This document shows positions 32,895 through 54,423 of a stretch of DNA of 64,000 bases, piece after piece; the first letter of the stretch is position 1; every line of letters begins with the position of its first letter. Origin of the DNA: Phaeosaccion multiseriatum (Eukaryota; Protista; Ochrophyta, other classes); contig OZ218953.1 in assembly GCA_965112735.1 (NCBI GenBank), forward strand, positions 4,588,001 through 4,652,000, in the 5' to 3' direction. The position numbers and the translations under genes were made by a program. The notes under the pieces are model-generated. The model had not been told where the DNA came from and searched no databases. It saw only the letters and a program-made list of their open reading frames with translations.

Positions 32895-33207
32895 TCATGG
32901 TCTTGGGCGTACATCTCGCTCAATGCTGGCCATGACCTGCCCCTTGAGGCGGTCCTTGCTCTGTCGCAAGTGCTCGAGCTCTTCTCTTCGGGAGGACCAG
33001 GCGTTTGTCGTCCCGGCCCCCAACCCCCTTGCTGTTGTCCTTCCACCGCCGTTGTATCCCCCCCTCCCGTCGTCGTGGTCATCGGCCAGTCCAACAAAAT
33101 CAACTTCGTACTGTTCGCCGCTGTGCAGTTGCTGTGCGAGAGTTGCAGAAAGAGAATCAGAACTTTGGTGCCGTAAAGTGCCTTCCTTCTGCCGCTCCTG
33201 CTGCCGC

Positions 33208-33239
<32 letters not shown>

Positions 33240-35065
33240 GGACGAATGTGTGCGTGGAGAGGAAACGCTCAGAAAAGTGGCAGCGAAGGCCGAAGGGCCA
33301 GGGCCAGCTGTCCCTTCTCTCCCTCCTCCTCGAAGGGCCGCGCCTTGTACGAGTGGGTGCAGAGGAGACGAGGGCCCAGCGTGCTCTTGCTGCTGCTGGT
33401 GCTGGCGGTGGTCCGGCGTTAAGGTACCCTGAGTAAGAGGCTGTGTAGAGAAGACTTGATGAGAAGGCGAGAAGGCAGATTCAGGTTGCTCCTGTTGCTG
33501 CCTTTGCTGCGTTTGCCACCGTCGGTCTGCTGCCTGTGCCCCTGCTGCTGCTGCTCCTCCTCCTGCTGCTGCTGCTACTGCTGTTGACTCCTCATCCCCT
33601 TCCCCTGGCACTTCCCCCGCGGCTCCTCCTCCTCCATAGGCCGCTCCGTGAGCCACTGGGGGCGTCGTGGCGCCTCCCGTTGCACCCGCAACTAGCCCCT
33701 GCCAACGCCCCTCCACCGTAGTGAGGCGCCGATCGAATTTGTCAAATCCTCTCTGCACAATCGCCTGGAGCTCTTCTACTCGAGGCTCCAGAGGCTCCAA
33801 TGCCTGCATTCGGGGCTCCAGGCATTCCAAGTCGTCGAGAGATAAGACTCGCTCTGCCACCACTTCCATCTGAGCACTCAAGACATCAGCCCGCTCACTG
33901 AAGCCACTTTCAACCCTCCTGACGCTCTCCACTTGCTTGTCACAGGCCTTTTCCACTCCACCCACTGCCTCCTCCAGGGTGTGCAGTTTGCGCTTCAGTG
34001 GAGAGACAGCTGTGCTGATCATCTGCTCCACTGTGGTGGGGGTGCTGGCTCGAGGGAGGCAAGCCTCGACCCGGCCCGCCACGGCTTGGAGCGCGGAGGA
34101 AAGCGCTTGGTGGGTCTTGATGCTCTGCTCTGCCTGCTCCTTGAGACTCTCCAGATCTTGCTCCAGCCTGGGGTCTCCTTTATTGGCTTTGCGGTGCAGG
34201 GCTGAGGCCACGCTGGCCTTGTTTGCTTTGAGGTCCAAGGCAGCGTGCACAGACCTGTCCAGCTCTGCCACGCTGCCACTGCTCGCCTTCCCTTCCAAGG
34301 CAACCCTGAAGTGCTCGAGGTCCAGCTTGCATTGCCCCTGAACCGCCTCGATTCGGGCGTGAGTCTCCTCCAAGTTGAGCTTGAGGAGCCGGGATTCACA
34401 GCCGTCTAATCGCCGGTACACGCTGGCCAGAGTCTTGTCCACGCCCTGCTCGAGGGCTCTCGTCCTGTCGGCCAGGTGCTGAACAGTCCTTTGCTGGGAG
34501 GCGGAGACAGAGCTTCCCAAGCGAGACACAGTGCTCCGTACCTCACGCAACTCAGCGGCGCTGCTCCTGTCTCCTGCTACAACGACGAGGTCATCTTTGG
34601 AGGCCTTCTTGGCCAGCCTCTCCCGAACGTCCTTCACCTCGGCGCGTAACGTTGCCTCTACGCCGGCCACTTCAGTCCGTAAGGAGGAGAGGGCTGAGCT
34701 GGCTTCCCCGGTGGCCCATTGTTCTTGCTGCCGCTGCCGCTGCTCCTGCTCCTGCTGCTGCTGGTGCTGTTCGTGCTGATCCTGCTGTCGACGGAGAGAA
34801 GTGACAGTGTGCTGGAGAGAGGCGATTGATTCTTGCTGCTCCGCGAGCCCGTCCAGAAGACCCTTGATGGCACTTCTCACCACCAGCTGCATATTCGCCC
34901 AGCTTCCGGTACCGTGCAGAAGCTCTGCCACCTGAGAGCGAGGGTGGGTTGCTGGAAGCTGAGCACGAGAATGAGGCAATTGCAGAGGAAGCTCCTCTCC
35001 CACCCCTCTCTTACCTGGATGCTTTCGAGTGGAGAACCTCGTATCGTGACGCCAGGAGATCCCAT
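32895..35065 (-). CDS. Uncharacterised coiled-coil protein (exons 35015-35065 and 32895-34931)
   Basis: MGSPGVTIRGSPLESIQ|VAELLHGTGSWANMQLVVRSAIKGLL joined in frame by a GTAAGA...CAG intron; long heptad-rich ORF with repeated L..KA motifs (LAKKASK, LEGKASS, LDLKANK, LHRKANK). Confidence 0.7.
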
Positions 35066-35396
35066 CCTTGGAGAACTCTATCGGTGAAACTCTCCCTCTC
35101 TCCCTTTCCCTTTCCTCTCTGCTCTTCAAATTTCCCAGACTTTCAGGACCATAGGCGAACAGCAGTCTCTTGCATTTACTGATACATGTCCCTTCCGCTG
35201 TTGCCTTGCCTCGCTGCGGTTGGGCTTCTTTCTCCCCTCTCTTTCTCAAAAGTATTCCTTGACTTCGAGCAGCTTTTTTTTTCTTTTCTCTACACGCTTA
35301 AGGGTTAGGGTGTAGCTATATATATATTTTCCTTTTACACGCGACTACGGCCCCTCCCAAAGCAGATCAAGGGGGATTATTCGCAGGCGTGGGAGC
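35066..35396. promoter_or_regulatory. Putative bidirectional promoter between the coiled-coil gene and the uricase fusion gene
   Basis: ~330 bp head-to-head spacer with a TATATATATAT tract at ~35317 and T-rich stretches. Confidence 0.4.
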
Positions 35397-36530
35397 ATGT
35401 CTCTCTCCTGCCATCACCACGGCAAAGGTAGACTATTCCCCCGCGGATTTCGGTCCTGAGCGAAAGAAGAAAGCTTCCTCTCATCGCCCTGTTCCCTCCC
35501 TTTCTCTGCAGGCCGTGTGCGTGTGATGAAGGTACGCAGGACCCCGGAGCGCCACGAGGTGATGGAGCTTACCGTGGAGGTCATCCTCGTCGGGCCAGTG
35601 GACGAAGCCTTCAATGAAGGCGACAACACAAAGAGTGAGTAAGCCAGGGCGCCTCGCTCTCTGCCTTTATTTTCTGACGCCTCTTCCCCCCCTTACACCT
35701 CTCTGTACTTCTGGCAGCTATCCCCCTTCTCTCCTTTGACATCTTTTCTTCCTTCTTCCCCTCTCTTTGCACCCACAGTCGTTGCTACGGACACACAGAA
35801 GAACACCGTCTACGTCCTGGCGCAGCGCCACGACTTTACCTCTGCAGAGGAGTTTGCCCTGCTACTGGCTGAGCACTTTGTGACGACATACCTAGCAGCT
35901 GTACACAAGTGCAAGATCACCATCGACGAGGACATTTGGGAGCGGCATGTTGCCTGTCCTCCAGGCAGCATGGACAAGACCGCCCACCACCATGGCTTCA
36001 TGAAGAACAGCCCCATGCGGGGCTGGGTGTGCGCCACCGCGGAGACGAAGAAAGACGGGGCAGTGGACAAGACCCTCTCCGCGGGTGTTAGAAGCCTGAC
36101 GCTCCTCAAGACCACGCAGTCCTCCTTCAAGGGCTTCATCCGCGACGAGTACACCCTGCTCCCGGAGGTGGATGATCGCTTGCTGTCTTCGTCCATCGAC
36201 GCAGATTGGTCATACGACTTGGCGACAGCGCCTCCCTACGGCGAGGCTCGTGTAGCCGCGGTGGATGCCCTTGTGCACGGCTTCCTCGGGCCCGCCGATA
36301 CGGGAGTACCCAGTGCCAGTGTTCAGGCCACACTGCTGGACATGGGCAAGGCTGCCCTCGCCGCTGTACCGAGCATGACGAGCATATCCATACAGGCACC
36401 CAACATTCACAACCTTCCGTGGCAAGGCGATGCACTTGGGGTCAAGAACGAGGACGCCAGCGGAAAACCCGACGTGTTCATACCCACGAGCGAGCCCCAC
36501 GGCTTAATCTCCGCGACCGTCGAGAGACGA
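35397..36530 (+). other. UOX: Uricase (urate oxidase) domain of the fusion
   Basis: HGK, VATDTQKNTVY, signature LLKTTQSSFKGFIRDEYTLLPEVDDRLLS, SASVQATL, PNIH, PHGLISATVER. Confidence 0.95.
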
Positions 36531-39500
36531 AGAGGAGGAGGAGGAGGCGATGATGTTAATACAGTCTTGAACGCTTCTCGTCATTGTTCCTCCTACTACT
36601 CGTTTGAGGAATGCGTTCCTCCTGCGATGGGTAGTCGACTCCTCTCGCAAGCCGCAAGCGGCTCTACGATGAGGGGTGGTAACTCTTCTGGGATCCTCTT
36701 CGCTCTGGGCGTGCCCACACTGCGGGCACCGGAGCACGCTGCCTTGACCTTCCTGGCGAGTCTTGTGCACGGGGAAGTGAGTGGTCGCCTCTCCAAGCTT
36801 CTGCAGAGGCGCGCTGAGGACCGGAGGTTCATAGACCGCCGCTCTCGCTCCCTCGCAACCTGTGCGAACCTTGCTCCGACCACAACGTCGCTTCTTGGCC
36901 ACCAGGACCAGCACGGGAGGGTGGTGGTGGGCCCCCTCAGGACAGACTACGCTAGCGTGGCGGAGGAGGGCGAGCAGCCCGTCGCTCCCCTTCCTGCGCA
37001 CCTCGACCTGTCCACCTCCCATGTGACTGTGTTTGGCCCGGCGGACTCGGCGGAGGCCTGCAGGGAGTATCTACACGCATTTCAGGATAGCAGAACCAGC
37101 AGCAGTGGTAGCGGCAGCGGCAGCAGCGGCAGCAGCGGCGCGAATAAGGCAGGGAAGTGGGGGGCCGACCTGGAAGATTCACAGACTCCGTTTCCAGAGC
37201 TCGTGCAGGCTGCTGCCGAAAACTTGACCGAGAGCTACCGCCTGATTCGGGATGAGAACACTGGAGCGGCAGGGGCAGGGCACGGGGCTGGACTGTCCTT
37301 CCCTGTTGTGCGGCTGCCTGGCTTGGGGTTGCCTTCTACGCATGCCTTCATCGCCGCCTCAGGTACGCCCGTGCCCCTCCACCTCTTCATCTTCGCACTA
37401 CACGTGTTTCACAACTGGCAAGACCCCGCGGCGCGATGCTTCTACCTACCCAAGTTGGAGAACGAAGAGGAGGCGGCATACTTTGCCTTCCTCATTAAGC
37501 TCGCTGAGGAAAGGCTTAAGGAGCTCCATCCGTCATATGAAATGGGCTCGGTGCGCGTCTTTTGCGTGATTGAAAGCGGTCGTGCCATCTTCCGAGTGCG
37601 TGAGATTGCAGAGGCGCTGTACCCTTACTTCTGTGGCGCCAGTCTCGGATGGTAAGTCACTGTCAGCCCACTGCCAACCCATTTTCAACTCAAACACCCA
37701 CCGTCAACCCAACCCTTTTACCAACCCAGGCACGACTACTTGGCATCCACCTCTCGCCTCTTCAAGGAGGCCGAACACTGGATCATGCCTTCCAAAACAG
37801 ACCCAGACATAGTGGTCAAGCATATCCGCGCACAGCACGTGCTGCTAGGAGACGTGGTGGGGCGGGGCATGGGTGCTGTGAGCGTTGGTGGTATGTATGG
37901 CGTCGTCCCTGTGAGCGACGACCCCACTTCCGCTTCGTATCAAGTGAGTCTGCGCGGACTGTTCAAGGACGTGATTGCTCAGCTCAGACGCGGTTTGGTG
38001 GGGTTCTGGGTGGCGTATGCGCCCTTCGCCCGCATTGGAACTGAGATGGTTCGCGTGTGGCTGCTGGCAGAAGGAGGAGGTGGAGGTGGAGGCGGGGGAG
38101 GAGGAGGAGGAGGAGGAGGAGGAGGAGGCATCATGGAGGTGGTAAAGAGGCATCTCACCGTACCAGAGTATGTGGAGCAAGTAGCAGCCTTCCTTGCACA
38201 AGGAGACGAACAGAGGGAGGCAGCAGCAGCAGCAGCAGCAGCAGACTTGGTGCTTGACGAGAGCCCGAGGCGGCCGCCCAGTGGAGAGGCGCTCGAGTCG
38301 CTGCTTCGAGTCAACATCTCGCACTGCCTGGTCTACCTCAACGAATGGCTACAGGGCAGCGGGAACATCTCGCTGGAGTCCGAGATTGAAGGTGAGAGGA
38401 GGGAGAGGAAGGGTTTTGCTTTTGTTTGGGGAGGGGGGGGGGCGAATGAGTTGTCGAGTTGCGTTGTGGGGCCAAGTACTTTTGGCTTCGTAGTAACGGC
38501 ACCGCTCATGCCCTCCGCCAATGGACCACCGAAGAAGGAATCGCAGCTTAATGCCCTTCATCCTGACCCCGTCAGTATCTTGTTTGCTTGCATACGTTGC
38601 TTACTTGCTTGCTTGGCTGGCTTTGCTTGCTCTGCTTGCTACTTGCTTTGCTTTGCTTTGTGTGCTTGCTTTGCTTGCGTTGCTTGCCCTGCTTATTGCT
38701 GACTTGCTTTGCCCTGCTTTGTCCTGCTTTGCCCTGCTTAACATGGTCTGTTTCCTTGCCTTTGCTTGCTTGTCTCTTGCCACCACTCCAACTCAGGCAT
38801 TCCGGTGCGGGTGGTGGACGATCTCGCGACTGTGGAGCGGTCCCGCTGGAGTCTGTGGAGGGAGCTCAAGGCGGGCAGGCTGGGTATGAGCCGCTTCTTG
38901 ACAGCCACTTTCGAAGAGGCACTCAGTATCTCCAAGGCAAACACCAACAGCAACACCAACATCAACACAAACACCAACAAGCAGCAACAGCAGGGGAGCT
39001 CCTCCCCCCAGTTGGGCTCCCCAAAGTCAACGAAGTGGCAGTCCGTGGCCTTGGCCGTCTTTCTGAAGCTCATGACGGAGCTCGAGTCCCCCGCGGAGTT
39101 CGTGCCCGAGCTGCTCATGCCCTTCACGTCGGCCCTCATTCGGCAGGCTTCGGACCCGCTTGCTGCTATGCAGAGCTGCGGAGGAGACGAGATGCTGGTA
39201 CTCCGTCCACCCCTGAGGCAGTGGTGCTACTACTTTAAGATGTGTGGGTGTACGCGCTTTGCAGATGAGGTGTCACAGAGGGACGTGTTGCTAGATGTAC
39301 AACACGTCAAGCAGGTGATCGGGACCTTCAGCAAGGAGGAGGTTGTGCAGGCAGCCAACTTCAATGGAGATATCGGCGGCAGCCCCGAAGGGATGGACAG
39401 CTTGGCCAGAGAAGAGCAGGCTAAGGTGCTGAACGGAGAGGAGGGGGTGCGGCAGGCTCTGCGCGAGCTCGGGCAACAGTACCTTGCCAAATTCGACGGG

Positions 39501-42500
39501 ATGAAGTTCATGGTCTCGGCCAAAGGAAAGTCGGGGCCAGAGCTGCTTCCCCTTCTCGAGGCACGCATCAAGAACAGCGAGGAGCAGGAGGTGCAGCATG
39601 CGAGGGAGGCCCTTAGGGAGATCACAGTCAAGAGGCTGACCTCAAAGCCGCCCGACTGCGCAAGGGTCAGGATGGAGGCTCTCTTGGCCAAGCATGGAGT
39701 TGCTGGTGCGTCCATTGCCCTGGTGTCTAGCTCCTCTTCCTCCTCCTCCTCCCCCTCCTCCCTCTCCTCGGCCGCCGCCACCAAGACCCATCAGCAGCAG
39801 CACATTGTGCTGGGTCTACGGGACAAGGCCTCGGATGAGCCCGTCACAGCGGATACGTGCTTTGAAGTGGCGTCTCTGAGCAAGTCCGTGGGCACGGCGT
39901 TTAGCATGGAGTACTTTCGGTCGCGAGGCGTCTCCATCTTTGACACCCCTGCCAACGCATTGCTCAAGAAGGGGGGCTCCTCCTTCCGCCTGAGTGGGCC
40001 GTACGCAGAGGAAGTGATGCTGGTACACCTCATGTCACACTCGGCACTCAACCTGCACTACGTGAACGGAGTGCCGCTGGATAGGGAGGATGCGAATGGA
40101 GGCTTGCCCGACATTCGACTACTCATCGAGGGGTGCTCTGATCCCGTTTCGTACACGCCCATCGAAGGTGAGAGAGAGATGGAGAGAGAGAGGCACGGCA
40201 TATCATCAATGAGAGAGAGAGGCACGGCATATCATCAATGAGAGAGAGAGGCACGACGTGTCACCATTGTGGTGCTTGAGTCCCCTTCCTCACTTCCTTC
40301 TTGTGGCCTGTCTGCCTTTCACCATCTCTCCCTTCTGTCTCTATCCCCATCTCTCTCTCCCTTTCCTCTCTCTCTCTCTCTGTACCCCCCCTCTCTCTCG
40401 TCTCTCCCCCCTCACTCGCCCTCTCTCGTGTAGTGCTCGGCCCGCCCGGTGAGGTGTTCCGCTACAGCGGGGGAGGCTTCCTCGTGCTACAACACATCAT
40501 CGAGAGCCTGGAGGGCGGCAAGAGGAGCATCGCTTCCATCTCACAGCCCTTCATTGACAGCCTTTTCGGCACTGCTGTATCACCAACTGCTGCTGCTTCT
40601 GGTGCTACTACTGGTGGTCCCGATCCGGAAGTAGCCTCGTCCTCCCTCTTCACCTTCGACCCCAACCCCAACCCCAGCAGCAATTTCAAGGTGGCTTGCG
40701 GCTACGACAGCGAAGGCGCAGTCATCCCGGGCACGCGCCTCGTCTTCCCAGCGTTTGCTGCAGGAGCGTTGGCGACTCCGGCGGCCATCCTGCACTTCTT
40801 GCAGACCCTCAGCGCGGCCTACGCAGACCCGAGAGGAGGGGGAGGAGCGGGGGCACTCGCAGGCCCTATTTCGCACGACACGGCTGTACTCATGCTGCAC
40901 GGGACGGACAAGGGGTGCCTCGACTTTATGGGTTGTAAGATGGGGGTGGGTATCTTCACGGCAGAGGCGGGTGGGAATCGCTTTGCCGTCCACCAGGGGG
41001 CGAACGACGGTTTCCGCGCGCTCTTTTTGCACTGCTACAAGGGCCCTGACGTGGGGACGGGTGTTGTGGTGTGCGCCAATGGAGGCAACAAGGCCGTGGG
41101 CTTCATCAGTGAAGCGGTGCAGGAGGTGCTAAAAGTGCTCAAGGTTACGGGTGTGGACTGCCATCTCTTCGACCGCCCACCGCCTTCCCTCCAGCAGGGG
41201 GGTGCCAAGACGGTTGTCAAACAGGAGGACCTTGTCAATTTGGGCTATAAGCAAGCCCTCTTTTCGGCCTTCAGGCCCGACCTGCCCGCGAGAATCGAGG
41301 ACGTCGACCCCGAGGCCTCAACGGGTGCCAACGACCCGCGTTGGGAGTACAACGGAGCCCGAGACGCGAAGGTGGTGTGTGTCACCAACCAGGCCTTTGC
41401 ACGGGCGGACAACCTTTGCTCGGCGCGCTTACCACTCTTCGACCCGGCGTTGTTTGGCCCTCAGGGCAAGGTGATGGACAGTTGGGAGACCACCCGACAC
41501 AACCCGGCCGTGTGCGATGAGCTTGTGCTGGCCCTGAAGGAGAGCATGGCAGTGAGCTTTGTCATGCTCTCTACCAAGTACCACACCGGAAACAACTTCA
41601 AAGAGGTAGAGGTGTTGGGTTTCCAATCCGAGGCGGCGGCGGTGGCAGCGATGCTGACCAAGAGCGGCGCTTCCTCTGCTTCTGCTTTGGGTGCTGTGGA
41701 GGGGGAGGGAGTGGGAGGAGGAGCGGTGCTGCTGCTGCCCAGGCACATGCTGAAGGGCCACTCGGAGCTCCGGGTGACTGTGGACCCCTCCACCTCCACC
41801 AAACCTGTGTCGCACATTCTCGTGCGCGCCTTCCCAGACGGGGGGCTGACTCGACTCGGCCTCTTCGACCGGAGCCTGCCCCAGGCGTTTCTCGAGGGCT
41901 TTGCTCCTGCTGCAGAGGCCGTGCCCATCCCCTGCTCGGACCCCGTACCTGCGCCGCTCAAGCCCCTCGCGATGGAGTACAACACCCCCAGCGAGGAGGA
42001 CATTGCTGCCAATCTGGCGACGATTCAGGTCGGGGAGGAGTACAACGTGGCAGGAAGGGCCTTTGGAGGGCGCTTCGTGTCGGCCACCAACGAGCATTAC
42101 GGGCCTGCCAGTGCTGCCCTGAGCCCCTACCCTCCCCTCGACATGTTTGACGGTTTCGAGTCGGCCAGGAGCCACAACCGAGAGAACGAGGAGTGCATCA
42201 TCGTGGCGCTTGCCAAGCCCTGCCTTCTCCATCGCATCGAGCTCGACTTTACCTTTTTTGTCAACAACGCTCCTCTGGAAGTCGCCATCTGGGGCATTGA
42301 CGCAAGCAGTATGAGCGGCAGTACGAATGGCGGTGGCGGTGGCGGTGACTTGCCCTGGAGTGAGGCAGCGCAGATGGTGGGTCGAACGTGTGTCAAGGCC
42401 TTCGCGGCCAATGTCAAGACCTTCGAGTTCCGCGGCGAGCAGCAGCAGAAGGTGACGGTGGATCACCTCAAGATCTCGCTGTACCCTGACGGAGGAGTCA

Positions 42501-42532
42501 ACCGCATACGGGCCTTCACCATGAAGGAGTAA
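35397..42532 (+). CDS. Five-domain purine-catabolism fusion protein: uricase + malate synthase-like + OHCU decarboxylase + beta-lactamase-fold serine hydrolase + allantoicase (~2052 aa)
   Basis: Exons 35397-35427, 35512-35634, 35779-37651, 37730-38391, 38797-40167, 40434-42532; all GT-AG and phase-compatible; total 6159 nt = 2053 codons with no internal stop. Splicing restores conserved motifs across junctions (HGK|GRVRV, GDNTK|IVATDTQKN, GASLG|WHDY). Confidence 0.9.
36730..39150 (+). other. Divergent malate synthase-like TIM-barrel domain of the fusion
   Basis: TVFGP, ADLEDS, VVRLPG, FYLPKLENEEEA, CVIES, GASLGWHDYLAS, VGGMYG, GFWVA, NISHCLVYLNEWLQGSG, DDLATVERSRWSLW parallel malate synthase A motifs (DFEDS, YLPKLE, LIET, GRWDY, GGM, GTWVAHP, EDAATAEISR). 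Confidence 0.85.
39215..39640 (+). other. OHCU decarboxylase domain of the fusion (conserved His read as Asn in this copy)
   Basis: CGCTRFADEV, F(N)GDIG, AREEQAKV, L.ELG..Y..KF...FMVSA.GKS..E.L..LE.RI.N..EQE...A...L..I...RL fit the UraD family. Confidence 0.85.
39660..41140 (+). other. Beta-lactamase / serine hydrolase (class C, AmpC-like fold) domain of the fusion
   Basis: HGVAGASIALV, PVTADTCFEVASLSK (SxxK at 39873-39884), LMSHSAL, PPGEVFRYSGGGF, AAGALATP, HQGANDGF, GVVVCAN. Confidence 0.88.
41350..42529 (+). other. Allantoicase domain (two repeats) of the fusion
   Basis: TNQAFARADNL, GKVMDSWETTRHNP, TKYHTGN, FPDGGLTRL; second repeat GGRFVSATNEHYG, MFDGFESAR, FFVNNAP, LYPDGGVNRIRAF. Confidence 0.92.
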
Positions 42533-42792
42533 ATAGTGTGTATTGCATTGCTCTTTACATTAGTATATACATATTTACAAGTCCAAAGTGACACGCGACA
42601 GGGTGGTTTTCGCTTGCCATTGCCACACATATCCCTCTCTTTGCTCGCGGTTGCTTGTGCTGTGCTGACGCCCCCTTCAGTCACCCCTCAATCGAGCTGC
42701 TGGGCGTAAAGCACAAGAGGCAAAAGAAAGAGTTGTATGGTGTGAGGCTGAGCGCCTCTGCTCTGGGCCTTCACATGACTCAGGAGATGTGA

Positions 42793-43039
42793 CTAGCTGC
42801 CTCTGTAGGTGGAGTATCCAAACGGGTTCAGCAGCAAGGGCACATGGTAGTGCTCCGTGTCTGTGGTCTGGAACACGATTGACACCTCAGGATAGAAGCA
42901 CGCCGTACTGAGGCTCTCTTACATGTTGTAGCCGCCGGTATCGAAGTGCAGGCGATACACGCCTTGAGAAGGCACAGAGGAACGCACAGCAGGGAGCCGA
43001 GTAGCAGCAGCAGAACCAGAGCATCAGCACCACCACCAT

Positions 43040-43073
<34 letters not shown>

Positions 43074-43567
43074 GTACTCTCAGCGATGGTCAGTAAATGG
43101 CAAATTCCTGTCGCTCTTTTTTTCTTCTTCTATGCAGCAGGATACCACAACAAGGCCCAATCAATCCCGACCCCCCCTGCTGCTGGTCGTAAGTCTTCCT
43201 AAACTTTCCTCCCAGGTTCTCTCACCCGGCTCTAGAAGGACGTCGCTCTTCAGCAGATCCTTCACCCGCCCATCGTTGTCCGTCATCCTTTCGCTCGCCG
43301 CCCATGAGAGAGGAGGGTCGTAGAGAATAAGAAGGATTAGAAGAGCACGGGGGACCCGATCCGGAGCTCACACCCTCAAACAGCATTTGTTCTCTTTCTC
43401 CTCCTTACTCTATCAGATGTTGCTCACCCTCGGCAATGAGGGTCCATTCCTCTGTTGACTCCCCTGGCTGGTGGTCTCGCTCTGCTGCTGGGAGCGTGGG
43501 AGCGAGATCATCCTCACTCCCGCGGTAGGCTTTCCCAAGCTCATGTCCAGGATAGATACGAGAGGTA
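42793..43567 (-). pseudogene. HIU hydrolase pseudogene (copy in duplication unit 1)
   Basis: Retains ...[19 protein letters not shown]. However, the last exon reads GGC TAC AAC ATG TAA, an in-frame stop where the intact copy has GGC TAC TAC GAG. Exon 1 has indels and no matching start codon. Confidence 0.88.
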
Positions 43568-44850: not shown

Positions 44851-47800
44851 ATGCCGCCCAATGCGGACGACCGGCAGGATAACGGAGTGGACGAGTGCAG
44901 GCAGCCGGCGAGGCGAGCTTTCAGAGGGTCAATCATACATTCGTTGGGCCTCGATGATCTTGAGATCGTCCCAGATGGGCTTATTATTGTCGATGCGGAT
45001 GGAGTTATTCTGCAGCTGCTGGACCTCAGCAGCGAGGAGAGCACTTTGGCCACTTCTCGCCTCTTCAAGGAGGCCGAACACTGGATCATGCCTTCCAAAA
45101 CAGACCCAGACATAGTGGTCAAGCATATCCGCGCACAACACGTGCTGCTAGGAGACGTGGTGGGGCGGGGCATGGGTGGTGTGAGCGTTGCTGGCATGTA
45201 TGGCGTCGTCCCTGTGAGCGACGACCCCACTTCCGCTTCGTATCAAGTGAGTCTGCGCGGACTGTTCAAGGACGTGATTGCTCAGCTCAGACGCGGTTTG
45301 GTGAGGTTCTGGGTGGCGTATGCGCCCTTCGCCCGCATTGGAACTGAGGTGGTTCGCGTGTGGCTGCTGGCAGAAGGAGGTGGAGGCGGAGGAGGAGGAG
45401 GAGGAGGAGGAGGAGGAGGCATCATGGAGGTGGTAAAGAGGCATCTCACCGTACCAGAGTATGTGGAGCAAGTAGCAGCCTTCCTTGCACAAGGAGACGA
45501 ACAGAGGGAGGCAGCAGCAGCAGCAGCAGCAGCAGACTTGGTGCTTGACGAGAGCCCGAGGCGGCCGCCCAGTGGAGAGGCGCTCGAGTCGCTGCTTCGA
45601 GTCAACATCTCGCACTGCCTGGTCTACCTCAACGAATGGCTACAGGGCAGCGGGAACATCTCGCTGGAGTCCGAGATTGAAGGTGAGAGGAGGGAGAGGA
45701 AGGGTTTTGCTTTTGTTTGGGGAGGGGGGGGGGCGAATGAGTTGTCGAGTTGCGTTGTGGGGCCAAGTACTTTTGGCTTCGTAGTAACGGCACCGCTCAT
45801 GCCCTCCGCCAATGGACCACCGAAGAAGGAATCGCAGCTTAATGCCCTTCATCCTGACCCCGTCAGTATCTTGTTTGCTTGCATACGTTGCTTACTTGCT
45901 TGCTTGGCTGGCTTTGCTTGCTCTGCTTGCTACTTGCTTTGCTTTGCTTTGTGTGCTTGCTTTGCTTGCGTTGCTTGCCCTGCTTATTGCTGACTTGCTT
46001 TGCCCTGCTTTGTCCTGCTTTGCCCTGCTTAACATGGTCTGTTTCCTTGCCTTTGCTTGCTTGTCTCTTGCCACCACTCCAACTCAGGCATTCCGGTGCG
46101 GGTGGTGGACGATCTCGCGACTGTGGAGCGGTCCCGCTGGAGTCTGTGGAGGGAGCTCAAGGCGGGCAGGCTGGGTATGAGCCGCTTCTTGACGGCCACT
46201 TTCGAAGCGGCACATCGCATCTCCAAGGCAAACACCAACACCGTCACCAACAAGCAGAAGCAGCAGCAGCAGCAGCAACAGCAGGGGAGCTCCTCCCCCC
46301 AGTTGGGCTCCCCAAAGTCAACGAAGTGGCAGTCCGTGGCCTTGGCCGTCTTTCTGAAGCTCATGACGGAGCTCGAGTCCCCCGCGGAGTTCGTGCCCGA
46401 GCTGCTCATGCCCTTCACGTCGGCCCTCATTCGGCAGGCTTCGGACCCGCTTGCTGCTATGCAGAGCTGCGGAGGAGACGAGATGCTGGTACTCCGTCCA
46501 CCCCTGAGGCAGTGGTGCTACTACTTTGAGATGTGTGGGTGTACGCGCTTTGCAGATGAGGTGTCACAGAGGGACGTGTTGCTAGATGTACAACACGTCA
46601 AGCAGGTGATAGGGACCTTCAGCAAGGAGGAGGTTATGCAGGCAGCCAGCTTCCATGGAGATATCGGCGGCAGCCCCGTAGGGATGGACAGCATGGCCAG
46701 AGAAGAGCAGGCTAAGGTGCTGAACGGAGAGGAGGGGGTGCGGCAGGCTCTGCGCGAGCTCGGGCAACGGTACCTTGCCAAATTCGACGGGCTGAAGTTC
46801 ATGGTCTCGGCCAAAGGAAAGTCGGGGCCAGAGCTGCTTGCCCTTCTCGAGGCACGCATCAAGAACAGCGAGGAGCAGGAGGTGCAGCATGCGAGGGAGG
46901 CCCTTAGGGAGATCACAGTCAAGAGGCTGACCTCAAAGCCGCCCGACTGCGCAAGGGTCAGGATGGAGGCTCTCTTGGCCAAGCATGGAGTTGCTGGTGC
47001 GTCCATTGCCCTGGTGTCTAGCTCCTCTTCCTCCTCCTCCTCCCCCTCCTCCCTCTCCTCGGCCGCCGCCACCAAGACCCATCAGCAGCAGCACATTGTG
47101 CTGGGTCTACGGGACAAGGCCTCGGATGAGCCCGTCACAGCGGATACGTGCTTTGAAGTGGCGTCTCTGAGCAAGTCCGTGGGCACGGCGTTTAGCATGG
47201 AGTACTTTCGGTCGCGAGGCGTCTCCATCTTTGACACCCCTGCCAACGCATTGCTCAAGAAGGGGGGCTCCTCCTTCCGCCTGAGTGGGCCGTACGCAGA
47301 GGAAGTGATGCTGGTACACCTCATGTCACACTCGGCACTCAACCTGCACTACGTGAACGGAGTGCCGCTGGATAGGGAGGATGCGAATGGAGGCTTGCCC
47401 GACATTCGACTACTCATCGAGGGGTGCTCTGATCCCGTTTCGTACACGCCCATCGAAGGTGAGAGAGAGATGGAGAGAGAGAGGCACGGCTTATCATCAA
47501 TGAGAGAGAGCGAGGCACGGCATATCATCAATGAGAGAGAGAGGCACGGCATATCATCAATGAGAGAGAGAGGCACGGCATATCATCAATGAGAGAGAGA
47601 GGCACGACGTGTCACCATTGTGGTGCTTGAGTCCCCTTCCTCACTTCCTTCTTGTGGCCTGTCTGCCTTTCACCATCTCTCCCTTCTGTCTCTATCCCCA
47701 TCTCTCTCTCCCTTTCCTCTCTCTCTCTCTGTACCCCCCCTCTCTCTCGTCTCTCCCCCCTCACTCGCCCTCTCTCGTGTAGTGCTCGGCCCGCCCGGTG

Positions 47801-49881
47801 AGGTGTTCCGCTACAGCGGGGGAGGCTTCCTCGTGCTACAACACATCATCGAGAGCCTGGAGGGCGGCAAGAGGAGCATCGCTTCCATCTCACAGCCCTT
47901 CATTGACAGCCTTTTCGGCACTGCTGTATCACCAACTGCTGCTGCTTCTGGTGCTACTACTGGTGGTCCCGATCCGGAAGTAGCCTCGTCCTCCCTCTTC
48001 ACCTTCGACCCCAACCCCAACCACAGCAGCAATTTCATGGTGGCTTGCGGCTACGACAGCGAAGGCGCAGTCATCCCGGGCACGCGCCTCGTCTTCCCAG
48101 CGTTTGCTGCAGGAGCGTTGGCGACTCCGGCGGCCATCCTGCACTTCTTGCAGACCCTCAGCGCGGCCTACGCAGACCCGAGAGGAGGGGGAGGAGCGGG
48201 GGCACTCGCAGGCCCTATTTCGCACGACACGGCTGTACTCATGCTGCACGGGACGGACAAGGGGTGCCTCGACTTTATGGGTTGTAAGATGGGGGTGGGT
48301 ATCTTCACGGCAGAGGCGGGTGGGAATCGCTTTGCCGTCCACCAGGGGGCGAACGACGGTTTCCGCGCGCTCTTTTTGCACTGCTACAAGGGCCCTGACG
48401 TGGGGACGGGTGTTGTGGTGTGCGCCAATGGAGGCAACAAGGCCGTGGGCTTCATCAGTGAAGCGGTGCAGGAGGTGCTAAAAGTGCTCAAGGTTACGGG
48501 TGTGGACTGCCATCTCTTCGACCGCCCACCGCCTTCCCTCCAGCAGGGGGGTGCCAAGACGGTTGTCAAACAGGAGGACCTTGTCAATTTGGGCTATAAG
48601 CAAGCCCTCTTTTCGGCCTTCAGGCCCGACCTGCCCGCGAGAATCGAGGACGTCGACCCCGAGGCCTCAACGGGTGCCAACGACCCGCGTTGGGAGTACA
48701 ACGGAGCCCGAGACGCAAAGGTGGTGTGTGTCACCAACCAGGCCTTTGCACGGGCGGACAACCTTTGCTCGGCGCGCTTACCACTCTTCGACCCGGCGCT
48801 GTTTGGCCCTCAGGGCAAGGTGATGGACAGTTGGGAGACCACCCGACACAACCCGGCCGTGTGCGATGAGCTTGTGCTGGCCCTGAAGGAGAGCATGGCA
48901 GTGAGCTTTGTCATGCTCTCTACCAAGTACCACACCGGAAACAACTTCAAAGAGGTAGAGGTGTTGGGTTTCCAATCCGAGGCGGCGGCGGTGGCAGCGA
49001 TGCTGACCAAGAGCGGCGCTTCCTCTGCTTCTGCTTTGGGTGCTGTGGAGGGGGAGGGAGTGGGAGGAGGAGCGGTGCTGCTGCTGCCCAGGCACATGCT
49101 GAAGGGCCACTCGGAGCTCCGGGTGACTGTGGACCCCTCCACCTCCACCAAACCTGTGTCGCACATTCTCGTGCGCGCCTTCCCAGACGGGGGGCTGACT
49201 CGACTCGGCCTCTTCGACCGGAGCCTGCCCCAGGCGTTTCTCGAGGGCTTTGCTCCTGCTGCAGAGGCCGTGCCCATCCCCTGCTCGGACCCCGTACCTG
49301 CGCCGCTCAAGCCCCTCGCGATGGAGTACAACACCCCCAGCGAGGAGGACATTGCTGCCAATCTGGCGACGATTCAGGTCGGGGAGGAGTACAACGTGGC
49401 AGGAAGGGCCTTTGGAGGGCGCTTCGTGTCGGCCACCAACGAGCATTACGGGCCTGCCAGTGCTGCCCTGAGCCCCTACCCTCCCCTCGACATGTTTGAC
49501 GGTTTCGAGTCGGCCAGGAGCCACAACCGAGAGAACGAGGAGTGCATCATCGTGGCGCTTGCCAAGCCCTGCCTTCTCCATCGCATCGAGCTCGACTTTA
49601 CCTTTTTTGTCAACAACGCTCCTCTGGAAGTCGCCATCTGGGGCCTTGACGCAAGCAGTATGAGCGGCAGTACGAATGGCGGTGGCGGTGGCGGTGACTT
49701 GCCCTGGAGTGAGGCAGCGCAGATGGTGGGTCGAACGTGTGTCAAGGCCTTCGCGGCCAATGTCAAGACCTTCGAGTTCCGCGGCGAGCAGCAGCAGAAG
49801 GTGATGGTGGATCACCTCAAGATCTCGCTGTACCCTGACGGAGGAGTCAACCGCATACGGGCCTTCACCATGAAGGAGTAA
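44851..49881 (+). CDS. Chimeric gene: guanine deaminase N-terminal 67 aa fused in frame to the malate synthase C-half + OHCU decarboxylase + beta-lactamase-like domain + allantoicase (~1433 aa)
   Basis: Exons 44851-45682, 46088-47458, 47783-49881 (4302 nt, open). MPPNAD...SSEESTLA matches the protein starting at 51387; TSRLFKEAEHW onward matches the fusion gene. Confidence 0.82.
47474..47607. repeat. ~29-31 bp intronic minisatellite (GAGAGAGAGGCACGGCATATCATCAAT): about 4 units here, about 2 in the paralogous intron (40183-40256)
   Basis: Direct reading of both introns. Confidence 0.8.
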
Positions 49882-50141
49882 ATAGTGTGTATTGCATTGC
49901 TCTTTACATTAGTATATACATATTTACAAGTCCAAAGTGACACGCGACAGGGTGGTTTTCGCTTGCCATTGCCACACATATCCCTCTCTTTGCTCGCGGT
50001 TGCTTGTGCTGTGCTGACGCCCCCTTCAGTCACCCCTCAATCGAGCTGCTGGGCGTAAAGCACAAGAGGCAAAAGAAAGAGTTGTATGGTGTGAGGCTGA
50101 GCGCCTCTGCTCTGGGCCTTCACATGACTCAGGAGATGTGA

Positions 50142-50382
50142 CTAGCTGCCTCTGTAGGTGGAGTATCCAAACGGGTTCAGCAGCAAGGGCACATGGTAGT
50201 GCTCCGTGTCTGTGGTCTGGAACACGATTGACACCTCAGGATAGAAGCACGCCGTACTGAGGCTCTCGTAGTAGCCGCCGGTATCGAAGTGCAGGCGATA
50301 CACGCCTTGAGAAGGTACAGAGGAACGCACAGCAGGGAGCCGAGTAGCAGCAGCAGAACCAGAGCATCAGCACCACCACCAT

Positions 50383-50419
<37 letters not shown>

Positions 50420-50879
50420 GTACTCTTACTCTCAGCGATGGTCAGTAAATGGCAAATTCCTGTCGCTCTTTTTTTCTTCTTCTATGCAGCAGGATACCAC
50501 AACAAGGCCCAATCAATCCCGACCCCCCCTGCTGCTGGTCGTAAGTCTTCCTAAACTTTTCTCCCAGGTTCTCTCACCCGGCTCTAGAAGGACGTCGCTC
50601 TTCAGCAGATCCTTCACCCGCCCATCATTGTCCGTCACCCCTTCGCCGCCCATGAGAGGAGGAGGGTAGAGAACAACACAAGTGAGCGACCTGACTGGAA
50701 GAGCACGGGGGACCCGAAGCTCATTCATTTGTTCCTTACTCTATCAGATGTTGCTCACCCTCGGCAATGAGGTTCCACTCCCCTGTTGACTCCCCTGGCC
50801 TCTGCAGGGAGATCCTCACTCCCGTGGCAGGCTTTCCCAGGCTCGTGTCCAGGATATGCGAGGTGATCTGGCTCACCAT
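50142..50879 (-). CDS. uraH: 5-hydroxyisourate (HIU) hydrolase, transthyretin-like, 115 aa (exons 50759-50879, 50578-50640, 50142-50305)
   Basis: [18 protein letters not shown]|VTDNDGR, G|[36 protein letters not shown] (YRGS signature). Confidence 0.93.
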
Positions 50880-51386
50880 ACTCCACGCAGCAGCAGAGCA
50901 AGAGCCAAAGGGAAATAGAATGGGGGAAGAGTGAGCGTAAAAGTGTAAAAGTAATGGATGGCAACTAACGGCTTCGTGCGTGCCAAACTCCGAAAGTTCG
51001 ATCAAAGTTCCCGCCCTCAATTATTTTTCCCTTTCTTCCTTAAAGCCAGGGCTTATACAGCCGACAGATACAAAGGTAGATGCACAAATAATGAGTCTCT
51101 ACCCTTCTTTCCTTAGTTTAATGCGCTGTGTCCACAGGAGCCCTGTTGCTGCTAACCATTCCGTACATAACCTTAAGTTCGTCAGAACAACTCCTCACAA
51201 TCCTTTCCTTCCTCTCCCCCTCTCCACCTCCTCTCTTCCTTCCTCAACCTTAAAACTGATGAACTTCTCACAGTCCTTCCCCACCTCCCCCACTCTCCAA
51301 TTCCGCTCTTCCTTCCTCACAGCATCCCTACTATTCAGCGCCAAGTCTTCGACTGACCAAAGCTGTTACGCTGCTGAGCGGGGGGC
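50880..51386. promoter_or_regulatory. Putative bidirectional promoter shared by HIU hydrolase and guanine deaminase
   Basis: 507-bp head-to-head spacer between two genes of the same pathway; a diverged copy lies upstream of the chimera (~44497-44850). Confidence 0.5.
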
Positions 51387-54300: not shown

Positions 54301-54423
54301 AGTGAGAGCGTCACGTCCAGCACCGTGTCCAGCAGCACGACGCAAACCTCGACTCGCGCTGGCACGGGCATGCGGGGTAGCACGAGTTTCGCAAACCTGC
54401 CGGAAGATGAACAAGTGAGCTAG
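51387..54423 (+). CDS. GDA: Guanine deaminase (7 exons)
   Basis: IPGMIDAHCHAPQ, LPLLDWLERYTFPTE, SGTTFASYFATIH, GKVTMD, ITPRFVPSC, Q|SHLSEN, AHCCH, HCPSSN, GIGTDVAGG, FYLATVG.A, GNFLPGKKLDA, GDDRCI; GT-AG phases consistent. Confidence 0.95.

Follow-up and report, generated by a model that had tools for sequence, protein, structure and literature searches.

Gene model of the five-domain locus

The window, by which the whole analysed stretch of 64,000 nucleotides from Phaeosaccion multiseriatum is meant, carries on its forward strand a six-exon gene (35397-42532) whose predicted product joins a uricase, a malate synthase-like (MSL) barrel, an OHCU decarboxylase, a beta-lactamase-fold (BL) domain and an allantoicase. 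Its exons and domains are the following:

35397-35427, + strand: exon 1, with the start codon and the uricase N-terminus with HHGKG; gap-free alignment to the stand-alone uricase P0001
35512-35634, + strand: exon 2, uricase, aligned to stand-alone uricases
35779-37651, + strand: exon 3, uricase remainder, linker and N-terminal half of the MSL domain in a single continuous ORF
37730-38391, + strand: exon 4, middle of the MSL domain, with a poly-Gly insert inside
38797-40167, + strand: exon 5, C-terminal part of the MSL domain, OHCU decarboxylase and N-terminal part of the BL domain
40434-42532, + strand: exon 6, BL remainder, two allantoicase repeats and stop codon
35397-36536, + strand: uricase domain (Pfam PF01014), aa 1-303, introns 1-2 inside
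36537-36662, + strand: fusion linker, aa 304 to about 345, a (GGA)n Gly run and an AT-richer stretch
36663-39137, + strand: MSL TIM-barrel domain, aa ~346-1010, introns 3-4 inside; R563, E650, W676-H677-D678, W769, D905
39225-39677, + strand: OHCU decarboxylase domain, aa ~1040-1190; Asn1086 where the catalytic motif has His, Glu1103 retained
39693-41173, + strand: BL serine hydrolase domain, aa ~1196-1600, intron 5 inside; Ser1256-x-x-Lys1259, Tyr1364, His1540-x-Gly
41321-42529, + strand: allantoicase domain (Pfam), two repeats, aa ~1650-2052

The initial annotation had proposed the same six exons, and they hold: all have GT..AG borders, and joining them gives 6159 nt, i.e. 2052 codons and a stop, in agreement with the protein length first proposed. 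The joins at introns 1 and 2 are gap-free in alignment against stand-alone uricases, as are those at introns 3-5 when the spliced product is aligned with intron-less homologues. Introns 3 and 4 interrupt the MSL domain and intron 5 the BL domain, while the domain borders lie inside exons as first described, that between uricase and MSL in exon 3, MSL/OHCU and OHCU/BL in exon 5, and BL/allantoicase in exon 6.

Pfam searches on the long ORFs find Uricase, MS_TIM-barrel, OHCU_decarbox, Beta-lactamase and Allantoicase in this order. The matches are strong for Uricase (126.6 bits against a cut-off of 25, two stretches for the two T-fold repeats, E 1.2e-36), OHCU_decarbox (PF09349, 67.9 bits against 24, E 1.9e-18, profile positions 39-154) and Allantoicase (PF03561, 145.7 bits, two stretches, E 1.3e-42); Beta-lactamase (PF00144) is found at E 4e-07 and 1e-05, and MS_TIM-barrel is weak, with 24.7 and 16.3 bits, under its cut-off of 26.4. 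The uricase is 54-55% identical to stand-alone uricases and matches solved ones at E 1e-33. Compared with both, five motifs are intact (N-terminal Lys, ATDT Thr, R-D-E-Y-T Arg, SVQ Gln and PNIH Asn/His), for whose residues we assume the catalytic roles of Aspergillus flavus uricase. Stand-alone relatives end in RSRL and a stop; here the domain ends in ATVERRR and runs into the Gly run. Frame 0 alone is open through the linker, the other two being closed, and no in-frame stop follows the uricase. Independent short-read contigs match 36540-37094 without difference and continue upstream; the four sequencing runs found contain genomic DNA (introns are present).

The four-domain family and the uricase fusion

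The combination of MSL, OHCU decarboxylase, BL and allantoicase is a pre-existing family of ~1550-1600 aa. A search with exon 3 matches the N-termini of proteins of 1500-1775 aa, and Pfam scans of six of these find MS_TIM-barrel, MS_C, Beta-lactamase and Allantoicase, with OHCU_decarbox in three of the six. The family comprises 558 clusters at E<=1e-10 and occurs in 284 GTDB species, mostly Bdellovibrionota, and also in Planctomycetota, Chlamydiales and stramenopile protists; it is common in marine protists and among predatory bacteria, but no published study of it was found in the literature. Bacterial examples are the 'serine hydrolase' proteins of Oligoflexus tunisiensis and Bdellovibrio spp. 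and the 'hypothetical protein' MSR29236.1 of Phycisphaerales, and protist ones are GBG28752.1 of Hondaea fermentalgiana ('Malate synthase, glyoxysomal') and MMETSP thraustochytrid transcripts. Automatic names of family members are 'serine hydrolase' or 'malate synthase'. Residues ~330-2052 of the window protein can be aligned co-linearly with family members from end to end (39-47% identity); the order of the domains is unchanged, and the invariant motifs GASLGWHD, SxxK, Y-S-G and H-x-G are shared. The window protein differs in its extra N-terminal uricase, its introns and the Asn in place of the OHCU-motif His; it also lacks a peroxisomal PTS1, ending in FTMKE, whereas the C-termini of eukaryotic relatives are SKL, SRL or ARL.

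In bacteria, the four-domain gene is adjoined at 67 of 82 loci by a PuuD-type urate oxidase and a transthyretin HIUase, mostly directly upstream on the same strand, and xdhABC is present at about 24 of the 82. The 30 commonest neighbour families include no allantoinase, AllA-type lyase or malate synthase. Among 59 fused metagenome loci, HIUase occurs in 52, and AllA, AllB, AllD and Gcl in none.

The five-domain form itself also exists elsewhere. P0300, a 1940-aa uninterrupted ORF from a TARA Oceans scaffold, gives one BLASTP alignment with the window protein (aa 3-2052 against 2-1940, 39.9% identity). Together with P0354 (both from TARA Oceans and JGI metagenomes and named 'urate oxidase' by JGI) it has the five domains in the same order, aligns end to end over 2100 columns, carries a uricase of the same eukaryotic clade and likewise lacks PTS1, but differs from the window gene in its intron-less ORF, 34% GC genome, shorter linker and retained OHCU His. 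The gene model, the Pfam domains and this co-linear ORF bear out the earlier claim of one gene for one five-domain protein of urate catabolism: a single fused product is predicted here with high confidence, and it would presumably be expressed as one polypeptide in P. multiseriatum. That the architecture is undescribed is true insofar as no paper was found, but public databases contain the four-domain core in abundance and the five-domain form as well, both unnamed or misnamed.

In a tree, the window protein falls into one starred clade with P0300, P0277 and P0047. P0047, a probable transcript contig that begins with its own Met, and P0277/P0367, whose upstream flank is stop-rich and AT-rich, are its two nearest relatives; neither is seen fused to a uricase, and both branch between it and P0300. 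The uricase fusion is therefore either patchy in distribution or arose twice. Smaller fusions of enzymes from this pathway are known: the allantoin synthase found in plants, diatoms and bacteria consists of HIU hydrolase and OHCU decarboxylase (review PMC13751858). Another is Bacillus PucL, a fusion of OHCU decarboxylase and uricase, and PDB 6A4M is among the solved-structure matches. These two-domain proteins cover adjacent steps, whereas the window protein, with its five domains, leaves out the HIU hydrolase step and adds two folds not known in these roles.

Downstream of the gene, the following features are relevant:

42796-42993, - strand: final exon of a gene for a transthyretin-type HIU hydrolase, ending in YRGS; convergent with the five-domain gene
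about 43490-43560, - strand: first exon of the same gene, beyond the duplication; VSILD instead of SHILD
50145-50888, - strand: second copy of the HIU hydrolase gene, SHILD to YRGS, appears intact
37747-43468, no strand: first unit of a tandem duplication; 45050-50799 matches it at about 98% identity
44851-49881, + strand: chimeric paralogue, 67 new codons and then, in frame, an MS-like fragment from aa 683

HIU hydrolase is not simply missing: it is encoded just downstream on the opposite strand. In the window an HIUase gene adjoins each of the two copies, and a convergent HIUase gene also follows downstream in the relative L174. Contig depth doubles from about 37740 onward. After the MS-like fragment, the chimeric paralogue carries OHCU decarboxylase (with His), BL domain and allantoicase, and its ORF is intact over the shared exons.

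Proposed catalytic assignment of the fused domains

The MSL barrel retains much of the malate synthase active site. R166, E250, D278 and D447 of E. coli malate synthase A (Arg166 is assigned as catalytic, Glu250 and Asp278 as Mg ligands and Asp447 as the catalytic base) correspond to R563, E650, D678 and D905 in the window and are invariant in 134 of 134 relatives; the equivalent of W365 is likewise invariant in all 134 and kept here. Across the family, however, an invariant Trp-His replaces Arg276-Trp277 of the G-R-W-D motif of malate synthase A, and the active-site motifs contain new invariant polar residues (D118, H277 and Y331). Bacterial members score 136-140 bits against the 594.5-bit cut-off of the malate synthase A equivalog (TIGR01344, EC 2.3.3.9), and MS_N is absent from every member scanned with Pfam. 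As judged from these sequence features, MSL is a subfamily separate from malate synthase A.

Hundreds of proteins carry MSL joined to allantoicase. A stand-alone member, P0010, shares its operon with allantoate amidohydrolase and (S)-ureidoglycine aminohydrolase (323 bits, cut-off 200), an arrangement which recurs at two further loci (L092 and L159). The only other enzymes of this operon make ureidoglycolate and cannot split it, and no AllA-type lyase was found at the 82 and 59 fused loci. Experimental precedent comes from MS-like proteins of vertebrates and other eukaryotes, which co-evolve with allantoicase and were shown to be ureidoglycolate lyases, the zebrafish protein among them (Dembech et al. 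2023, PMC10120013). The Danio rerio MSL/UGL and the window MSL are both malate synthase homologues functionally tied to allantoicase, keep the glyoxylate-site residues and replace Arg276. They are not the same, however: as compared through the description in PMC10120013, the window MSL has neither Arg276Ile nor Trp365Met, residue 276 being Trp here instead of Ile and W365 being kept instead of Met, and the Dembech lyase is also marked by a 2-aa insertion. That group is described as eukaryote-only (PMC10120013), whereas the window subfamily is largely bacterial and its MSL is covalently fused to allantoicase. The separate subfamily, the P0010 operon and the zebrafish precedent make a lyase at least as likely as a synthase; a ureidoglycolate lyase has about an even chance of being correct, and a malate synthase or bifunctional enzyme is a more doubtful assignment.

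The initial annotation had read the barrel as a true malate synthase, so that the protein would lead from urate to malate and detoxify glyoxylate like DAL7 in the yeast DAL cluster, with ureidoglycolate split by allantoicase or spontaneously. The five invariant residues would fit this, malate synthase A provides the nearest solved structures, and an aromatic residue also occupies the place of Arg276 in G-type malate synthases. Purine clusters can contain genuine malate synthase genes (PMC10120013), and allantoicase itself is reported as active on ureidoglycolate in a title cited there, so that a separate lyase would not be strictly needed. Against this stand the sub-cut-off scores, the Trp-His replacement with the new polar residues, the lack of MS_N, the ureidoglycolate operon of the stand-alone member, the fused loci without AllA and the known MS-like lyases. 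A route to malate is therefore rather unlikely, and 'urate to glyoxylate' is the more likely span.

The BL domain resembles class C beta-lactamases only remotely (E about 4e-06) and contains S1256-L-S-K1259, Y1364-S-G and H1540-Q-G, in which the SxxK, Y-S-G and H-x-G motifs are family-invariant. Conversion of allantoin to allantoate is the sole step without an enzyme both in the conserved operons and in the window. As no allantoinase or AllA-type lyase recurs near the four-domain genes, elimination from the gene context within +/-10 kb makes the BL domain a reasonably probable allantoinase. Known allantoinases are either metal-dependent amidohydrolase TIM barrels (AllB/DAL1) or have a polysaccharide-deacetylase fold (PuuE). 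The serine beta-lactamase/PBP fold is unrelated to both, and if the assignment is true, the BL domain is a new kind of allantoinase.

The OHCU decarboxylase step, which had been placed on the chain, is represented by a domain that is present (the Klebsiella pneumoniae enzyme matches it at E 1e-13) but altered. Asn1086 falls at the position of His67 in that enzyme's AHPRIG motif; this His is presumed catalytic from zebrafish and Klebsiella studies. Glu1103 (Glu87) is retained. His occupies the position in 129 of 134 relatives, the downstream paralogue, P0300 and P0047. With this motif His replaced, the OHCU decarboxylase of the five-domain copy is probably weak or dead.

Proposed pathway and form of the product

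The best explanation of the whole, and on balance a probable one, is a 2052-residue multi-enzyme of purine-ring (ureide) catabolism in which a uricase has been joined to the four-domain enzyme. A eukaryotic, peroxisome-type, cofactor-less uricase would have lost its PTS1 and stop codon and become attached N-terminally to the older enzyme, with a short Gly-rich linker between the two. The uricase would convert urate to 5-hydroxyisourate (HIU), and the separate transthyretin-type HIU hydrolase would convert HIU to OHCU. The OHCU decarboxylase domain would give (S)-allantoin, although it is probably impaired here and the paralogue 7.3 kb downstream keeps the His. The BL domain may then open the hydantoin ring of allantoin to yield allantoate, from which allantoicase would release urea and (S)-ureidoglycolate, and the MSL barrel may split the latter into glyoxylate and urea; the roles of BL and MSL are putative throughout. 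Channelling of intermediates by a metabolon-like polyprotein, as first suggested, is unsupported. The polypeptide does not carry every consecutive step; PucL and allantoin synthase are likewise without demonstrated channelling. The benefit of the fusion is likely co-expression, fixed stoichiometry and co-location instead of tunnel-type channelling.

The long ORF could overstate the fusion if uricase and four-domain enzyme were made separately, by an internal promoter, a start at Met335 or Met349, or proteolysis of the linker. These in-frame Met codons in or near the linker are close to the start sites of relatives, P0047 and P0277/P0367 appear to start at the corresponding positions, and the AT-richer linker resembles a former 5' UTR. 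Translation could thus begin internally and yield a four-domain isoform. Two separate products are nonetheless improbable: the uricase part has no in-frame stop and the other frames are closed, so a stand-alone uricase could arise by cleavage only; it lacks the PTS1 of its stand-alone relatives; and in P0300 a single uninterrupted ORF retains this fusion, its linker being shorter still.

The fused multi-enzyme is also preferred over the still less probable reading as a decaying paralogue with a recently relaxed ORF, the working genes being the downstream chimera and other loci, for although the OHCU-motif His and PTS1 are lost, 54 of 284 family near-invariant columns are gone and the two OHCU domains differ by 9 non-synonymous and 1 synonymous changes (5 derived in the five-domain copy), the ORF of 2052 codons is intact and its five introns are correctly placed, the uricase motifs are kept, and BL and allantoicase have lost just 1 of 88 such columns (allantoicase keeps 48 of 49). 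Most of the MSL changes (52 of 187 columns lost in this lineage) are common to the whole stramenopile clade and therefore old. The paralogue has neither a uricase nor a complete MSL and is changed at two invariant Gly, so that the copies appear to complement one another instead of being redundant.

Gene model and architecture of the five-domain protein

The polyprotein gene consists of six exons (35397-35427, 35512-35634, 35779-37651, 37730-38391, 38797-40167 and 40434-42532, + strand), as the initial annotation had it; all introns are GT..AG, and the joined exons of 6159 nt give 2052 codons and a stop. Pfam finds a uricase, a weak malate-synthase TIM barrel, an OHCU decarboxylase, a beta-lactamase fold and an allantoicase, in this order. 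All four domain borders lie within exons, as had also been claimed. Three introns interrupt domains, two of them the malate-synthase-like (MS-like) barrel and one the beta-lactamase fold, and these joins are gap-free when the spliced protein is aligned with intron-less homologues; both uricase introns are equally gap-free against stand-alone uricases. In the linker between the uricase and the MS-like domain, the coding frame is the sole open frame. Short-read contigs from four public runs of one sample match 36540-37094 exactly and extend further upstream. A search for RNA runs yielded only these four, whose contigs carry the introns over 36540-42539 and thus represent genomic DNA. Low-complexity inserts (poly-Gly, Asn/Thr and poly-Ser at aa 791-809, 945-957 and 1207-1216, in exons 4 and 5) interrupt otherwise conserved domains.

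An independent homologue without introns lends strong support to the first reading, that the gene would encode one five-domain protein. This homologue, P0300, was found with the nearest relative P0047 as query; it has 1940 aa and represents a cluster of 51 members, and a 7.9-kb scaffold from TARA Oceans (34% GC) encodes it as a single ORF without interruption. Its Pfam domains are the same five in identical order, and a single BLASTP alignment joins aa 3-2052 of the window protein to aa 2-1940 of P0300 at 39.9% identity. The five-domain architecture, of which the initial annotation knew no description, is not unique to this alga. A JGI twin of P0300 is named “urate oxidase”.

Origin of the fusion and spread of the four-domain family

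Exon 3 was used as a query against 1.84 billion representative proteins. The uricase half matched ordinary uricases of 280-400 aa, the best at 54-55% identity (one from Pinguiococcus pyrenoidosus), and the second half matched the N-termini of proteins of 1500-1775 aa. No protein matched both halves, which first suggested a fusion confined to the window, a view overturned by P0300. Six of the long proteins were scanned with Pfam and contain MS_TIM-barrel and MS_C, the beta-lactamase fold and allantoicase, with OHCU decarboxylase in three. Of the 558 clusters retrieved at E<=1e-10, almost all have OHCU decarboxylase in precomputed Pfam lists. The clusters go by the source names “serine hydrolase”, “malate synthase”, “aldolase/citrate lyase family protein” and “hypothetical”. 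The public names of P0279, P0354, P0187 and other members are misleading, as each covers one of four or five domains.

When each GTDB species was represented by a single genome, relatives turned up in 284 species. The 80 GTDB loci retained are mostly from Bdellovibrionota (Bdellovibrio, Bacteriovorax, Halobacteriovorax, Oligoflexus), with Planctomycetota in addition, and Chlamydiales also carry the four-domain gene. Eukaryotic carriers include contigs with UBR1, spectrin, proteasome and Ras genes, complete MMETSP transcripts (one from Thraustochytrium) and Hondaea fermentalgiana, whose GBG28752.1 (P0279) is named “Malate synthase, glyoxysomal”. Several eukaryotic members end in the peroxisomal signals SKL, SRL or ARL; the window protein terminates in TMKE.

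In the tree of the four-domain part, the starred clade (P0300,(P0277,(window,P0047))) has thraustochytrid proteins as its sister, with the bacteria outside. In the uricase tree, both fused uricases group with stand-alone uricases of eukaryotes in a single starred clade, and the window uricase is only 31-33% identical to bacterial uricases adjoining the four-domain gene, which indicates that a gene of the host itself supplied the uricase part. Uricase relatives that stand alone end in ...RSRL and a stop. The fused gene instead continues with ...ERRR, a (GGA)n run and an AT-richer stretch; the latter holds two Met codons, which coincide with the start positions of relatives. The nearest relatives P0047 and P0277 look unfused; their upstream sequence of just 66 nt (L086) and 262 nt (L174) is too short to speak against an upstream uricase exon. 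The uricase tree fits a single fusion followed by losses as well as two separate fusions.

Two Chlamydiales MAG contigs (L088, L089) carry the four-domain gene in truly bacterial chlamydial surroundings (G6PD, OpcA, RuvX, CTP synthase). A first tree placed this gene inside the starred clade with eukaryote-context members and the window protein; a second placed it with the non-stramenopile eukaryote-context proteins P0020 and P0156, separate from the window's clade. Its placement is possibly the trace of a gene transfer between chlamydiae and eukaryotes.

Candidate functions of the MS-like and beta-lactamase-fold domains

Few computational clues to function are as strong as enzyme fusions. What gives the window protein its wider interest is the four-domain family, so far unstudied, together with the two functional assignments suggested by it. 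The fusion and a bacterial operon assign two pathway steps to folds never linked with either.

All neighbours were clustered at 82 bacterial loci of the four-domain gene. At 67 of them, it is found together with genes for an HIU hydrolase of the transthyretin family and a membrane urate oxidase of the PuuD type; in most of these loci both genes lie immediately upstream of it and on its strand, the urate oxidase before the HIU hydrolase. xdhA/B/C is present at about 24 loci, and a CDA-fold deaminase and molybdenum-cofactor genes occur at a few. Among the 30 neighbour families seen most often at the 82 loci, there is no allantoinase, AllA lyase or malate synthase. The 59 fused metagenome loci contain HIU hydrolase (52), PuuD (30) and cofactor-less uricase (12), with no match to the E. 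coli seeds AllA, AllB, AllD and Gcl. At a Phycisphaerales locus, uricase and HIU hydrolase are divergent from the four-domain gene and xdh lies behind it. The operon, conserved in L006-L085 (e.g. L064:9641-9964, L051:8280-9653), mostly in Bdellovibrionota and often with xdhABC alongside, resembles a module for purine salvage in predatory bacteria. Its PuuD-type urate oxidase has a C-terminal CarboxypepD_reg-like domain. No description of this PuuD/HIU hydrolase/four-domain operon was found.

Two steps of the pathway, allantoinase and ureidoglycolate lyase, are left without an enzyme, and two domains, the beta-lactamase fold and the MS-like barrel, without a step. The beta-lactamase-fold domain only remotely resembles class C beta-lactamases; its motifs Ser-x-x-Lys, Tyr-Ser-Gly and His-x-Gly are kept family-wide (S1256/K1259, Y1364 and H1540 in the window protein). 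By elimination, it is a candidate allantoinase. Such a serine hydrolase would open the cyclic amide of allantoin, which is chemically reasonable.

The MS-like domain was aligned to E. coli AceB (K-12 record) for 134 family members and the window protein. R166, E250, D278, D447 and W365 are kept in 134/134 members and the window protein, while Trp-His for Arg276-Trp277 (motif GASLGWHD), Asp for Phe118 and Tyr for Ala331 are family-invariant replacements. MS-like proteins that co-evolve with allantoicase are ureidoglycolate lyases carrying Arg276Ile and Trp365Met, a group described as eukaryote-only (Dembech et al., PMC10120013). The subfamily of the window protein fits neither the malate synthase nor the Dembech-type lyase pattern exactly. 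It is without MS_N and reaches 136-140 bits against a cut-off of 594.5 bits for malate synthase A.

The gene context speaks for a lyase. In Desulfogranum marinum, a stand-alone MS-like protein, 51-56% identical to the fused domains, belongs to an operon (L090:7043-14946) in which it is placed between an amino-acid-type ABC transporter and the pair (S)-ureidoglycine aminohydrolase and allantoate amidohydrolase; a GntR regulator is also part of the operon. The arrangement is repeated at two metagenome loci (L092, L159). The two accompanying enzymes produce ureidoglycolate and cannot split it. The operon links the subfamily to ureidoglycolate in a second context, here without allantoicase. The genomic context of a second stand-alone MS-like protein (P0057) gave no functional hint, and a protein atlas search returned only bacterial “putative malate synthase” clusters of 625-672 aa. 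The chances that the domain is a ureidoglycolate lyase appear roughly balanced. That it is a malate synthase, or a bifunctional enzyme, is rather unlikely. The name “urate-to-malate” polyprotein is unsupported.

Near-invariant columns of the MS-like domain (187 in all) are lost to the extent of 25-37 across the stramenopile clade, 52 in the window protein and 69 in P0047; those of the beta-lactamase-fold and allantoicase domains are almost intact.

A fuller picture is tentative and, taken in its entirety, somewhat doubtful. The beta-lactamase fold may be a third, serine-hydrolase class of allantoinase, and the MS-like domain a largely bacterial ureidoglycolate lyase lineage or the bifunctional ancestor postulated by Dembech et al. 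With allantoicase and OHCU decarboxylase, and with uricase in a few marine protists, almost the entire route from urate to glyoxylate would then sit on one polypeptide. In this alga, that polypeptide would have lost its peroxisomal targeting and started to divide tasks with a tandem paralogue. Channelling, as suggested in the initial annotation, finds no support; the consecutive steps of the pathway are not all on the chain. This makes the protein a natural five-domain test case for the benefit of fusion when a chain omits some consecutive steps.

If true, these assignments would give the allantoinase step to a beta-lactamase-fold serine hydrolase and the ureidoglycolate lyase (or malate synthase) step to a distinct, mostly bacterial MS-like subfamily. 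This bears on whether synthase and lyase had a bifunctional ancestor, an open question in PNAS 2023 (PMC10120013), and on whether the lyase branch is truly confined to eukaryotes. The assignments would also put right the names of hundreds of database entries, such as “serine hydrolase”, “malate synthase, glyoxysomal” and “urate oxidase”, and the family would show how predatory bacteria and marine protists may regain nitrogen from purines. A 2026 review of uricolytic enzymes gives HIU hydrolase-OHCU decarboxylase as the only fusions (PMC13751858). A literature search that reached few subscription journals returned nothing on an allantoinase with the beta-lactamase fold or on this architecture with four or five domains, so that “not described” is provisional.

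Tandem duplication and neighbouring genes

Features of the window around the polyprotein gene

32895-35249, - strand: 784-aa ORF next to the polyprotein gene on its upstream side, without a Pfam match at E<=0.001
37747-43468 and 45050-50799: 5.7 kb duplicated in tandem, copies about 98% identical, with a period of about 7.3 kb
42796-43560, - strand: HIU hydrolase (transthyretin-type), first copy, last exon 42796-42993, ends YRGS, convergent with the polyprotein gene
44851-49881, + strand: chimeric paralogue, whose 67 new codons lead in frame to residue 683 of the MS-like domain
50145-50888, - strand: HIU hydrolase (transthyretin-type), second copy, ends YRGS, convergent with the paralogue
about 52333-54420, + strand: guanine deaminase, amidohydrolase-type, at least two exons, partial matches to TIGR02967
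56674-57486, + strand: COQ7-domain ORF (ubiquinone biosynthesis), unrelated to the purine cluster

The duplication, from which the chimeric paralogue arose, takes in the last two-thirds of the polyprotein gene together with flanking sequence downstream of it. The depth of independent DNA contigs doubles from about 37740, its left edge, which shows that it is present in the reads. The 5' part of the chimeric paralogue has no Pfam or NCBIfam match; after its MS-like fragment follow OHCU decarboxylase (His kept), beta-lactamase fold and allantoicase, with the ORF of the shared exons intact. The two copies differ at 29 residues, and the Asn/Thr insert also varies between them, being Gln-rich in the paralogue. 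In the OHCU decarboxylase domain, nine differences are non-synonymous and one is synonymous, with the five-domain copy derived at five residues. One of these is Asn1086, where the paralogue, P0300, P0047 and 129/134 relatives have a His that aligns with Klebsiella His67 (AHPRIG motif); a literature search found no paper on this residue of OHCU decarboxylase. In the MS-like fragment of the paralogue, two family-invariant glycines are altered (G729A, G767R).

The first HIU hydrolase copy has a diverged first exon outside the duplication, with VSILD instead of SHILD, and may be impaired; the second looks intact. In the relative L174, HIU hydrolase is likewise convergent. No allantoinase, AllA or xdh gene lies within the 64-kb window. 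The guanine deaminase, the polyprotein copies and the HIU hydrolase genes form a small purine-catabolism cluster.
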